Part shown: positions 19,714-44,080 of the stretch, piece by piece
Layout: each line of letters starts with the position of its first letter
How positions within the stretch are numbered: position 1 is the stretch's first letter
From: Ministeria vibrans ATCC 50519
Lineage: Eukaryota > Protista > Filasterea
Assembly: GCA_943704425.1 (NCBI GenBank)
Contig: CALSCP010000904.1
Coordinates: 24,874 to 88,873 of the forward strand
Direction: 5' to 3'
DNA length: 64,000 nt
Made by a program: the position numbers and the translations under genes
The notes under the pieces: generated by a model
Databases searched by the model: none
What the model was told of the DNA's origin: nothing
The model's input: the letters and a program-made list of their open reading frames with translations, nothing else

Positions 19714-22700
19714 CTACGCAGTAAACTCGTCATTTAGATCCAACCCAGCGTCAAAAGTTGATAATTCAACAACACTGTCTGCACCGGAATGTCCCTTGTT
19801 CTCGTAGATATGCTACAAAAAAGAAAAAAGAAATATAAACACAAACGAGCTGCAAAAAATATATAAATATCAAGAGATACTAACCTCGTAGATTTGTGCG
19901 TAGACATCGGACGAATCAGAGTCACGCATGGACTGGCGAGCGCGGGCACGGGTCGAAGCCGGGCCCTTGCGGGCACCAGGTGCATCGTACTCGGCCGACT
20001 GCGCCCACGATGCAGGGCGGTTGGGGTCCGTGATGGCCGCCGATGAGACCTGACGCGAAGGCGTAAATTGACCTACAACCGAACAGACAAATATGAAATC
20101 AGAATAAATCGGTACACCACTGCAACACGTAGAATGCGTGTTCATACCGGTGGAGCTGCGCTTCTTGTAGTAGACAAAGACGAGAAGGATAATGATGAGG
20201 ACAAGGCAGATAACACCCACAGCAATGCCAATGTACAATCCTGTTTTGCTGCCGCTGTTCGCGCCCTGACCCGCCGGTGCAGTGCACTCGTACATCCCAA
20301 CGCCATCCGAGCAGATTTCGTTGACGGCACAGGGACTGGATGCACACTAGAAAAAAAAAGAAGAAAAAAAAATTATGCATTTTTTGCGATCAAGGAAAGG
20401 AATTTATGAACTATCCGTACCTCATCAATGTTGAACTCGCAGTTAGAACCAGTGTAAGCGACGTTGCACGCACACTGGTAACCATCAACCACAGGGGCTG
20501 AGCACACCCCGCCATTTTGGCATGGAGCAGAAGCACACTACGAAACCGAAACGATGGGAGTAAGCACGGACAGAAATTAATAATAATAAAAAGAAATTAA
20601 TATAAATAAAACTTTATTATTATTATTATTCTTATTATTATTATTACTCTTATTATTATTAACAGGAATAATAATAATAACAGGAATAATAATAATAAGA
20701 ATAATAATAATAATAATAATAATAATAATAATAATAATAATAATAATAGTAGTAATAATAATAATAATAATAATAATAATAATAATAATAATCTTGCTTG
20801 TACCTCGTTAATGTCTACACAATCGGACCCAGTGTAGCCCGGATCGCAAGTGCACGTGTAGCCATTGAGAAGGGGTGTACAGGTGGCCATGCCACGACAA
20901 GGGCTCGAATCGCAGAAGTTGAGACGGGTCTCACAGGAGGTGCCAGTAAAGCCAGGCGGACATGCGCAGGTAAACTCGTTGAGAAGGTCAGTGCAGGTGC
21001 CGCCGTTAGAGCATGGGTTGGAGTCACACTCGTTGATGGCGAGCAGCACGGCGTAGCCGGGCGTGCTGATGAGACCACACGACGAGCCCGGTTGGACGTT
21101 GGTCGGGCACGAGCCAACGTTGCGACGACGCGACGAGAGCTGTTCAGCCGGCACGAACACGGTCGAGGTGAGGCCTGTCGTGTACATGGACGTCTGCGCA
21201 ACAATGGGGTTGTACGAAACAATACTCACAAAGACGTTGGTGCCAAAGGTGGCAATGCCGCTTGCAGTAATCAGGTACTGCTTGCTGCGAATCTGCGCGT
21301 TGGGGTTGTTGCCTGTGGCCGTCGGTGACGGAGTGTTGACAATGGCAACGGTGACAAGGGTGGTCGTGGGCACAGTGTTGGCCGGGAACTCCAAGTTGAG
21401 CGTGTCGTACTGAAGCGAGCCACCTGACGGCTCAAGCATGATACCGGGGGTCTGGCAGCTAGTGCCTACAAAGCCGGCGGCGCAGCTGCACGTGTACGAG
21501 ACAACACCGTCAACGCAGGTGGCACCGTTCTGGCACGGACCCGACGCGCAATCGTTAATGTTCACGCCACACGTCGCGCCAGTGTAGCCAACAACGCAAG
21601 CACACGTGAAACCGTTCGAAGAGTCGGTACAGATACCGCCATTGAGACACGGCGACGAGGCACACTCGTCCACGGCCATTTCGCAGAGCGAACCCGACCA
21701 GCCGGGCAGGCAAATGCAAGTGTAGCCGTCCGAGACATCGTTACACACGGCACCGTTCTGACATGGACTCGACATGCACTCATCCGTGTCGGCTGTGCAC
21801 GTCAAGCCGAAGAAGCCCGAAGAACAGATGCAGCTAAATGAGGCAATGCCATCGACGCACGTGGCGCCATTGGAGCAGGGGTTCGAAGCGCACTCGTTCA
21901 CATTAGTCTGACACGAAGAGCCCGAGAAGCCCAGGGCACAGCTACACGAGAAGGCGTTCACGCCCTCCTCGCACGACGCACCATTAGCACACGGCGACGA
22001 GGCACACTCATCAATGTCTACGCCACACAGAACGCCCGTGTAGCCGGGCGCACACGTACACGTGAACATGTTTAGTCCGTCGTTGCACTGGGCACCGTTC
22101 GAGCAAGGCGATGAGGAACACTCGTTAATGTTCAAGTTACACTGCGGTCCTGTGTAGCCCGGCACGCACACGCACTGATAGCCATCAACGGTGTCGACAC
22201 AGACGCCACCGTTGTCGCACGGGCCCGAGGCACACTCGTCAACCTGAGACGAACAAATCTCGTCAAAGTAGCCACTTGCACAAAAGCAAGCAAAACCGCT
22301 GGCGACGTCGGCACAAGTACCACCATTCTGGCAAGGGGACGAGGCACACTCGTCGATCGATGAGGCACATGTCGGTCCAAAGAAGCCACTGGTGCAGGCG
22401 CATGAGAACGAGCCGACACCATCGGTGCACACAGCACCGTTCATACATGGCGACGAAGCGCACTCGTCAATGGTCACGCTACAGTCGCTGGCAGTGAAGC
22501 CCGACGCGCACAGGCACGAGAAGCTGTTGGTACCGTCGATACACTGTCCGCTGTTCTGGCACGGCGACGACGCACACTCGTCGATGTTTCCAAGGCAAGT
22601 GGAACCAAAGTAGCCTGACGCACACTGGCACTGGAAGCTTCCAATGCCGTCGACACAGGTGCCACCGTTGTCACAGGGGTTCGAGGCGCACTCGTTGATG

Positions 22701-43700: not shown

Positions 43701-44080
43701 TATTACGCCCTGTACACGCTGACGAGAGGAACTCGGAGGGCGATAAGAAATCTCACGAGACAAATCACGTAGGAGGGAGATAGTAAAAAAAACCAATCGT
43801 ACTTTCCCATCACAAAGTTGATTGTTTCGGCCGCCTGATCAAAGTCACCATCGGCAACGACGGTGACGGTGGCGTCGCCGACAGCCGGAGGCAGGCCATT
43901 AAAGGTCAGCGTTTGCGTGTTGGGAGCAAAAGCCGCTCCAGTCGTGTTTGCTGTGATCGTGAACGTTGCCGCTGAGGTGCACGACGCGCCGTTTTGGCAT
44001 GGGGACGACGTACACTGAGACATGCCTTGAGGGAGGCTGGCAAGCAAGCAGACGACGGCAAGACACGAGAGGAATCGCAT
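19714..44080 (-). CDS. Giant (~7,000 aa) type I membrane protein: signal peptide, ~109 EGF/cbEGF modules (21 with a nested ~120-aa domain), ZU5-like domain, TM helix, Tyr-motif cytoplasmic tail
   Basis: ATG at 44080 begins the signal peptide MRFLSCLAVVCLLASLPQGMS. About 19 in-frame GT-AG exons (approximate): 44080-43803, 43622-43033, 42724-42346, 41995-41170, 41061-40242, 40157-39863, 39480-38824, 38735-38024, 37955-37110, 37016-33815, 33752-32910, 32564-28548, 28460-26805, 26312-25491, 25399-20804, 20537-20421, 20346-20148, 20072-19885, 19812-19714. TM LYIGIAVGVICLVLIIILLVFVYY followed by KKR. Ends ...LNDEFTA*. Confidence 0.9.
20167..20238 (-). other. Single transmembrane helix of the giant EGF protein
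   Basis: 24 hydrophobic residues followed by the stop-transfer sequence KKR. Confidence 0.85.
20600..20790. repeat. (TAT)n/(AAT)n intronic microsatellite
   Basis: Directly visible. Similar tracts fill introns at ~26320-26745, 28480-28545, 32585-32840, 37020-37080, 39540-39825, 42040-42335 and 42780-43020. Confidence 0.9.
26320..26745. repeat. (TAT)n intronic microsatellite spanning an N gap
   Basis: Long TAT trinucleotide run with an assembly gap at 26427-26436. Confidence 0.95.
32585..32840. repeat. (TAT)n intronic microsatellite spanning an N gap
   Basis: Directly visible. Confidence 0.95.
39540..39825. repeat. (TAT)n intronic microsatellite spanning an N gap
   Basis: Directly visible. 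Confidence 0.95.
42040..42335. repeat. (AAT)n followed by (TAT)n inverted microsatellite (intron) with N gap
   Basis: An AAT run switches directly to its reverse-complement TAT run at ~42090. Confidence 0.9.

Follow-up and report, generated by a model that had tools for sequence, protein, structure and literature searches.

A giant receptor-like protein of Ministeria vibrans combining EGF repeats, a nested sandwich domain and a ZU5-like domain

In animals, giant receptors and matrix proteins built of EGF repeats play a central part in cell contact and signalling; they have their origins in the unicellular relatives of animals, and giant lineage-specific EGF proteins are common among unicellular holozoans. 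Here, we ask what is encoded at positions 19714..44080 (minus strand) of a 64,000-nt stretch of the genome of the filasterean Ministeria vibrans ATCC 50519 (assembly GCA_943704425.1, contig CALSCP010000904.1, positions 24,874 to 88,873), hereafter the window, where an earlier note, made from the letters alone, had seen a single-pass receptor of ~7,000 aa and, possibly, a novel cell-surface system. Is this a receptor or a passive coat protein, one gene or several, and does it belong to a named animal family? Our verdict is that the span encodes a real, unannotated, lineage-specific giant receptor-like protein, very probably from a single gene for a type I single-pass membrane protein of ~7,005 residues. 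The gene model comprises 18 exons and 17 introns, with a coding sequence of 21,018 nt, that is, 7,005 aa plus the stop codon; this length is the arithmetic sum over the exons, and database searches were run exon by exon.

Layout of the protein and the domain nested in its EGF repeats

From the amino terminus onwards, the protein consists of a signal peptide, 21 super-repeats, 28 plain EGFs, a ZU5-like domain, two full EGFs and a truncated one, a transmembrane (TM) helix and a 103-aa tail. The signal peptide (22 aa; 44015..44080, on the minus strand like all parts of the gene), as read from the sequence, comprises M-R, a hydrophobic core and G-M-S before Q-C, and the first EGF begins directly after it, at 44014. 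The super-repeats, of which there are 21, as the earlier note had counted, are distributed over exons 1-15 (24689..44014) and usually have the order EGFa-EGFb-EGFc-EGFd, with EGFc carrying an inserted domain and EGFd missing from 2 of the 21. Introns 1, 2 and 6 each interrupt one insert-bearing EGF, and the other 18 lie wholly inside exons; in a profile search of the organism's own genome, the super-repeat copies of the window score E 1e-35 to 6e-45. The stalk that follows, 28 uninterrupted EGFs at 21437..24688, lies almost exactly where it had been placed before (~24690-21455), and a scan for the calcium-binding motif before Cys1 bears out the earlier division into 13 EGFs that lack it and later ones that mostly have it: the motif is absent from EGFs 1-13, present in 14-15, absent from 16-17 and present, in a loose form, in 18-28. 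Our total of 108 EGFs (104 complete in exons, 3 split by introns and 1 truncated) comes within one of the ~109 given earlier. The O-glucose consensus (C1-x-S-x-P/A-C2) is found in 98/104 complete EGFs and the O-fucose consensus (C2-x4-S/T-C3) in 77/104; these are consensus sites only and the glycans are predicted, while the genome contains loci of the GT90 and O-FucT families. Pfam scans of all exons returned EGF-type families only, with no LNR, ANK, DSL, LamG or kinase domain, in line with the absences listed in the earlier note.

The most distinctive part is EGFc, which is split between Cys3 and Cys4 by a domain of 128-134 aa with a cysteine pair of its own. All 18 uninterrupted copies follow the same pattern, C-x4-C-x5-C, the 128-134-aa insert and then C-x-C-x8-C; the units are 27-46% identical pairwise (mean 36%), and the invariant residues of the insert are E, F, D-C and C. 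One copy was folded from an alignment of the 18 paralogous units: a 159-aa unit at 28668..29144, in which Cys1-Cys3 precede, and Cys4-Cys6 follow, a 129-aa insert (28722-29108) with its cysteine pair. The model (pLDDT 91.7, pTM 0.80) is an all-beta sandwich, and on its basis we identify the insert with confidence as a jelly-roll sandwich. Its structural neighbours are the carbohydrate-binding domain of BcsB (Z 9.6), PNGase F (9.5) and the Kex2 P domain (9.3), followed by the furin P domain and FlhE (~8) and by CBM35/36/6 (7-8). The modelled fold falls in the broad jelly-roll, galactose-binding-like neighbourhood, and it says nothing firm on function because no single family stands out. For the domains of the protein, a protein atlas yielded leads only: ZU5 (0.88) and FlhE and P_proprotein (~0.78).

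At the sequence level, the relatives of the insert are bacterial. A profile of the insert alone matched 693 proteins at E<=1e-3, and 146 at E<=1e-10, in a library of 1.84 billion representatives. The best match is an internalin-like LRR protein from a bacterial metagenome-assembled genome (MAG), with 9 tandem copies (E 4e-109), which shares with the insert the D-C...C cysteine pair and an acidic D-L...E motif. All named matches are bacterial, among them MAG proteins of Acidobacteriota, Planctomycetaceae and Bacteroidota, and no model in Pfam or NCBIfam covers the domain in these relatives. Judged from these sequence matches, the insert is part of a widespread domain family that is mostly bacterial and has not been curated. 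Neither NCBIfam nor the PDB, searched by sequence, gave a match for the insert or for the ZU5-like domain. Among the 150 best matches, the domain is nested in an EGF only in a 221-aa metagenome fragment, and no entry with ~21 copies came up, so the protein itself is absent from that collection. A search with the exon 14 protein retrieved plain EGF arrays only, none with the insert, and in sequence the plain EGFs come closest to fibropellin, Crumbs and Notch-like arrays. The metagenome fragment is a predicted protein, 99% identical to exon 8, on a contig of 1,354 nt in ENA (P0133), and it reads on into the intron; this organism, or a strain very close to it, is therefore represented by genomic DNA in a public metagenome.

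Within the genome, the module recurs many times. The assembly from which the window is drawn (29.7 Mb, 2,860 contigs) holds 93 matches to the insert profile, on ~20 contigs, and in the six loci that were fetched (C1769, C1139, C1933, C2121, C894 and C905) most insert copies lie between two EGF halves. Thus, on sequence grounds, the split EGF is a standard composite module of this organism, and the gene at 19714-44080 is its largest regular array. One paralogous locus (C1769:43465-54012, L013) contains a 3,641-aa open reading frame (ORF) with at least 13 EGF-nested copies; an internal block of ~5.56 kb is repeated there with identical scores, reflecting either a very recent tandem duplication or a duplication in the assembly. 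Another (C124:27734-30154, L024), a 1,325-aa open frame, carries two insert copies together with a stretch that passes the Pfam ZU5 threshold (29.1 bits), so that the combination of insert and ZU5 recurs in other genes. Overall, both the nested module and the ZU5 cassette are found in many paralogues.

The membrane-proximal region and a candidate mechanism

Between the stalk and the membrane lies a domain of 140 aa (21029..21448), with S-S-R-R-R-N in a loop modelled at low confidence and a C...C-G-x-x-S motif. Four paralogues, 22-31% identical, share the EGF-domain-EGF layout, a G-x-x-x-x-P-x-G-G motif near the start and C...C-G-x-x-S near the end; R-R is invariant, and R-R-R is present in all 6 of the copies available. 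The fold model is moderate (pLDDT 61.7, with R-R-R in a loop below 50). Its top 14 matches in Foldseek are all ZU5 domains of ankyrins (probability 1.00), and GAIN domains, UNC5b and an NLRP1 complex come next; an independent aligner (VIA) gave ankyrin ZU5 Z scores of 10.0, 9.9 and 9.1, aligning 121-129 of the 140 residues, with the next family at 6.6. The GAIN domains of CD97, BAI3 and CELSR1, UNC5b and CARD8 score Z 5.7-6.6 against the model. A paralogue (L029:1295-2731) passes Pfam ZU5 at 24.9 bits (cut-off 21) over aa 238-296, and the same stretch, which keeps R-R-R and C-G-x-x-S, is also found at E 2.4e-15 by a profile of the family to which the window's domain belongs. The fold and the Pfam-passing paralogue therefore support the label "ZU5-like" that the earlier note had given, and the modelled domain is best described as ZU5-like and extracellular. 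No H-F-S or H-L-T autoproteolysis motif occurs in it, and no His-Leu precedes the conserved Ser; the genome contains two loci with a kexin/furin-type P domain (P_proprotein). The paralogue just mentioned (on C1157, minus strand) consists of six EGFs, the ZU5 with R-R-R and C-G-x-x-S and then a hydrophobic segment, and by its sequence this small protein represents the membrane-proximal cassette in its minimal form.

Downstream of the ZU5-like domain, exon 15 ends with two complete EGFs (20804..21028), and exon 16 (20148..20346) encodes a truncated four-cysteine EGF, a short linker, a 24-aa TM helix (~20237-20166) and then K-K-R, so that the ~4 EGFs expected here are in fact two full ones and a partial one. 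The helix contains the only 19-mer in the entire model that exceeds 1.9 on the Kyte-Doolittle scale. The cytoplasmic tail (19714..20165), whose length had been put at ~100 aa in the same reading that recognised the signal peptide, is 103 aa long as read across introns 16 (20147-20073, 75 nt) and 17 (19884-19813, 72 nt), both placed by GT-AG ends, low GC content and frame. It has no Pfam match and contains four tyrosine motifs, Y-D-A-P, Y-A-Q-I, Y-E-H-I and Y-E-N-K. Intron 16 (20073-20147) is itself in frame and stop-free; were it retained, the protein would gain 25 residues directly behind the TM helix and would stay unbroken.

What could such a protein do? As a whole, the reading that we favour, and to which we attach about even confidence, is that of a type I EGF rod with a nested array, a ZU5-like anchor and a tyrosine-bearing tail. 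Because the sandwich domain is nested within an EGF, its 21 copies would hang beside the rod and leave the EGF-to-EGF chain intact. EGF modules are ~2.5-3 nm long, and by simple arithmetic the rod, if extended, would measure roughly 300 nm. Together, the copies would form a multivalent array that binds a repetitive target, be it glycans, the surface of another cell or prey, and the 28-EGF stalk would serve as a spacer; for the EGFs that lack the calcium motif, the earlier note had proposed a putative role as a flexible hinge. A ZU5-like domain, recognised by its fold and through a paralogue, joins the rod to the membrane, and the conserved tribasic loop of this domain would probably be cut by a furin/kexin-type convertase. 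After cutting, the ectodomain would stay on its membrane stub by virtue of the sandwich fold, as after S1 cleavage of Notch or in GAIN-domain receptors, and pulling could shed it. Any signalling by the short tail, which has no enzyme domain, would depend on tyrosine motifs recognised by SH2 proteins. This full mechanism, with its multivalent adhesive rod, its cleavable ZU5 anchor and its phosphotyrosine tail, is offered tentatively, as possible but on balance doubtful.

Several points weigh against this reading. Ligand binding, cleavage and phosphorylation are predicted steps. With Z < 10, the insert has middling fold matches that are scattered over many sandwich families, and a lectin-like role for the modelled domain is only a guess. 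The ZU5-like model is weak (pLDDT 61.7, five sequences), and Pfam ZU5 (PF00791) gives the window copy no match at E<=10. The classic furin motif has an arginine at P4 that is missing from the R-R-R, and four tyrosine motifs within 103 residues could be chance. At the level of the gene, the splice junctions and the single 21-kb transcript are deduced from the sequence, the gap in intron 13 could conceal one or more further exons of whole super-repeats, as far as can be judged from the sequence, and exact-word scans of metagenomes for words from exons 14 and 16 gave zero matches.

The most serious rival is a passive protein of the coat or matrix, a structural or adhesive glycocalyx rod like the fibropellins or mucin-like fibres, in which no signalling takes place and the R-R-R loop is structural. 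Such a protein would suit a tail that is devoid of enzymatic and known adaptor domains, the affinity of the plain EGFs to fibropellin, Crumbs and Notch-like arrays, and the origin of the closest relatives of the insert, which are stalk repeats of bacterial surface proteins. It fits less well with the preservation of R-R in every copy, and of R-R-R in all six, within an otherwise variable loop of domains that are only 22-31% identical, or with the close spacing of the four tyrosine motifs in the tail. On this evidence, we consider a passive coat protein an unlikely, albeit reasonable, explanation.

The favoured reading of an anchored EGF rod can also be taken one step further, to an independently built, force-gated capture receptor. 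In it, a ~300-nm rod would carry 21 binding domains derived from bacteria, an extracellular ZU5 domain cleaved by a convertase would be the sole hold between the rod and the membrane, and a bound particle or an adjacent cell that pulls on the rod would shed it and so switch on phosphotyrosine signalling from the stub. If true, this would be the logic of Notch and the adhesion G-protein-coupled receptors (GPCRs) realised with different parts; we regard it as improbable.

Integrity of the gene model

That the span is a single gene is supported by several features of its exons and introns. The limits proposed earlier, 19714-44080, held when both ends were read base by base, with a start codon ATG at 44080 and a stop codon TAG at 19716-19714; the coding sequence amounts to 7,006 codons including the stop, each of the 18 exons is stop-free in its own frame, and the single TM helix agrees with the single-pass topology proposed at the same time. 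On the minus strand, the long stop-free frames are cysteine-rich (9-12%) and separated by AT-rich stretches; the frames mostly start right after TAG with C-x-S-x-P-C, and the exons mostly end with an acidic residue followed by GT. All 17 introns have the form GT...AG, with lengths of 63-492 nt, and the GC content is 57.6% in exons versus 16% in introns. Phase 0 prevails (15 of 17 introns), and 12 of the phase-0 introns share one site, after an acidic residue (mostly in D-I-D-E) that precedes Cys1 of an EGF. The repeat register is kept across every intron, no exon starting or ending out of it. The DNA of the window is eukaryotic.

The assembly contains four runs of N within the span, all intronic, at 26427-26436 (intron 13), 32705-32708 (intron 11), 39644-39671 (intron 6) and 42216-42223 (intron 3); their lengths in the assembly are estimates, and each is flanked on either side by the same (ATT)n repeat. 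Intron 6 (39481..39862, phase 0), with its gap in (ATT)n, cuts insert copy 5. On a profile built from the 18 uninterrupted split-EGF units, exon 7 matches from about position 24 (aligned 34-160) and exon 6 stops ~24 residues into the unit (counted by eye), so that copy 5 is complete across the intron. The halves cut by introns 1 and 2 join in the same manner, 1-66 then 71-160 and 1-72 then 76-159. Intron 13 (26313..26804, phase 0), again with its gap in (ATT)n, sits at the border of two super-repeats, after the fourth EGF of the one and before the first EGF of the other, with the register kept. Its region resembles that of intron 11 (26461-26834 versus 32583-32939, 85% identical over 375 nt), and this is the sole DNA-level self-similarity that a blastn self-comparison found within the gene; it suggests that either a block was duplicated together with its intron or the introns have been homogenised. 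The flanking coding repeats have no DNA identity detectable by blastn and are therefore old and diverged; collapse or another artefact of the assembly was rejected on this ground.

Words sampled from 38700-44300, where the exon share is 0.69, provide a view of transcription. A polyA RNA-seq run contains 0.64 of these words and four further runs contain 0.71-0.72, whereas runs of unstated kind, which we read as genomic DNA, contain 0.93. The shares in the RNA runs fit coverage of exons only, the junctions themselves being deduced from the sequence.

Could the span nevertheless consist of two or more adjacent EGF genes, or have missing or extra exons in its gaps? The four gaps of estimated length, the reliance of the exon junctions on sequence and the presence of paralogous genes of the same kind elsewhere in the genome would all allow it. 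Against it stand the single signal peptide and the single TM helix, the exons in repeat register, with domain halves that fit exactly across introns 1, 2 and 6, the same microsatellite on both sides of the gaps, the divergence of the coding repeats at the DNA level, which makes assembly collapse unlikely, and the size of the introns, all 63-492 nt, which leaves no room for promoters. We therefore deem a split into several genes, or a gene of different extent, quite improbable.

A long (GA)n/(GAGAGG)n tract (19530-19713) follows directly after the stop codon, and a short space separates the stop from a convergent Exo_endo_phos gene (ORF 18639-19466, plus strand). The neighbouring genes encode IQGAP-like, UBE3A-like (AZUL + HECT), RasGEF, Nup160 and class I/II-type PI3K proteins. 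The UBE3A-like gene (6195-9389, minus strand) combines AZUL and HECT in a single open frame of 1,064 aa, and the best public match of its HECT region, an EukProt entry labelled Opistho-2 (a filasterean), is only 49% identical, with animals and chytrids next, the genome being isolated in databases. The sequencing runs that contain the sequence are marine, and together these data point to an opisthokont, probably a unicellular holozoan, with a proteome absent from the public collections searched.

Relation to known EGF, laminin and ZU5 proteins

The closest precedent for the nested module is the short arm of laminin, which works similarly and is not the same family. In laminins, the L4 domains lie between Cys3 and Cys4 of an LE module, and L4 and LF have a CBM35-like fold (PMC5338690). 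As in the LE/L4 arrangement, found also in perlecan, a beta-sandwich placed between these two cysteines leaves the EGF-like rod unbroken, and the insert matches the same fold group through CBM35/36/6. The differences are equally clear: the host module is a six-cysteine EGF rather than an eight-cysteine LE, with the extra two cysteines inside the insert; a chain carries 21 insert copies versus one or two L4 domains; and the protein described here is anchored in the membrane. No laminin L4/LF chain appears in the top 50 when the insert is searched by fold, and Laminin_B (PF00052) has no match in the exon scans or in the whole genome at E<=10, a result that is weak alone since control genomes also gave none. 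Membership in the laminins was rejected, for both an eight-cysteine LE host and a Laminin_B insert are lacking.

The plain EGFs recall Notch, Crumbs, fibropellin and Eyes-shut, with which they share long six-cysteine arrays, partial calcium motifs, O-glucose and O-fucose consensus sites and a single TM helix. Unlike proteins of the Notch/Crumbs type, however, the protein has no LNR/NRR, ANK, LamG or DSL domains and instead has nested domains and a ZU5-like domain next to the membrane; its EGFs are three times as numerous as those of Notch. Membership in Notch was rejected since Pfam scans of all exons reveal no LNR/NRR region and the 103-aa tail has no RAM/ankyrin part, and Crumbs was rejected likewise, its defining features being absent. 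Receptor tyrosine kinases were set aside because no exon contains a Pkinase family.

The membrane-proximal domain matches the fold of ZU5 (ankyrin, UNC5, ZO-1, FIIND) and of GAIN subdomain B, and, like the GAIN domain, it sits just outside the membrane beneath a long adhesive ectodomain. The classic ZU5 is cytoplasmic, and this one is extracellular and flanked by EGFs. It further differs from ZU5 and GAIN proteins in that UPA, death domain, the H-L-T/S or H-F-S autoproteolysis motif and a seven-TM region are all missing, with a conserved tribasic loop instead. Adhesion GPCRs were rejected because the protein has a single TM helix rather than seven and no GPS motif (C-x-C-x-H-L-T/S). The bacterial surface-protein repeat (in MAG proteins named LRR, choice-of-anchor D, subtilisin family, CARDB or HYR), in turn, is clearly homologous in sequence to the insert, but its copies are arranged head to tail and are not nested in EGFs.

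A divergent member of Notch, Crumbs or the laminin short arm, which the Notch-like EGFs with their O-glucose and O-fucose sites and the L4-like position of the sandwich between Cys3 and Cys4 (PMC5338690) might suggest, is barely tenable given that LNR, NOD, ANK and LamG domains are missing, that Laminin_B has no match anywhere in the genome and that the EGFs have six cysteines and not the eight of LE. The novelty proposed in the earlier note needs qualification: the layout as such is absent from the library of 1.84 billion representatives, whereas the principle of the module has a precedent in laminin L4, the family of the insert is mostly bacterial and the gene is one of a paralogous family.

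What the giant protein of M. vibrans contributes, then, is first of all its nested module, which shows that laminins are not alone in hanging a sandwich between Cys3 and Cys4 of an EGF-like module, a trick used here 21 times per chain and in many paralogues, with a hung domain whose nearest sequence relatives are bacterial surface proteins. Next to the membrane, a ZU5-type domain lies outside the cell, just where Notch and the adhesion GPCRs have their cleavage-and-release modules. If the tribasic loop is cleaved, this arrangement would be a testable third solution to the mechanical gating of receptors. Even if it is not cleaved, the nested unit, compact and well folding in the model, offers an opportunity for studying how domains are grafted into EGFs.

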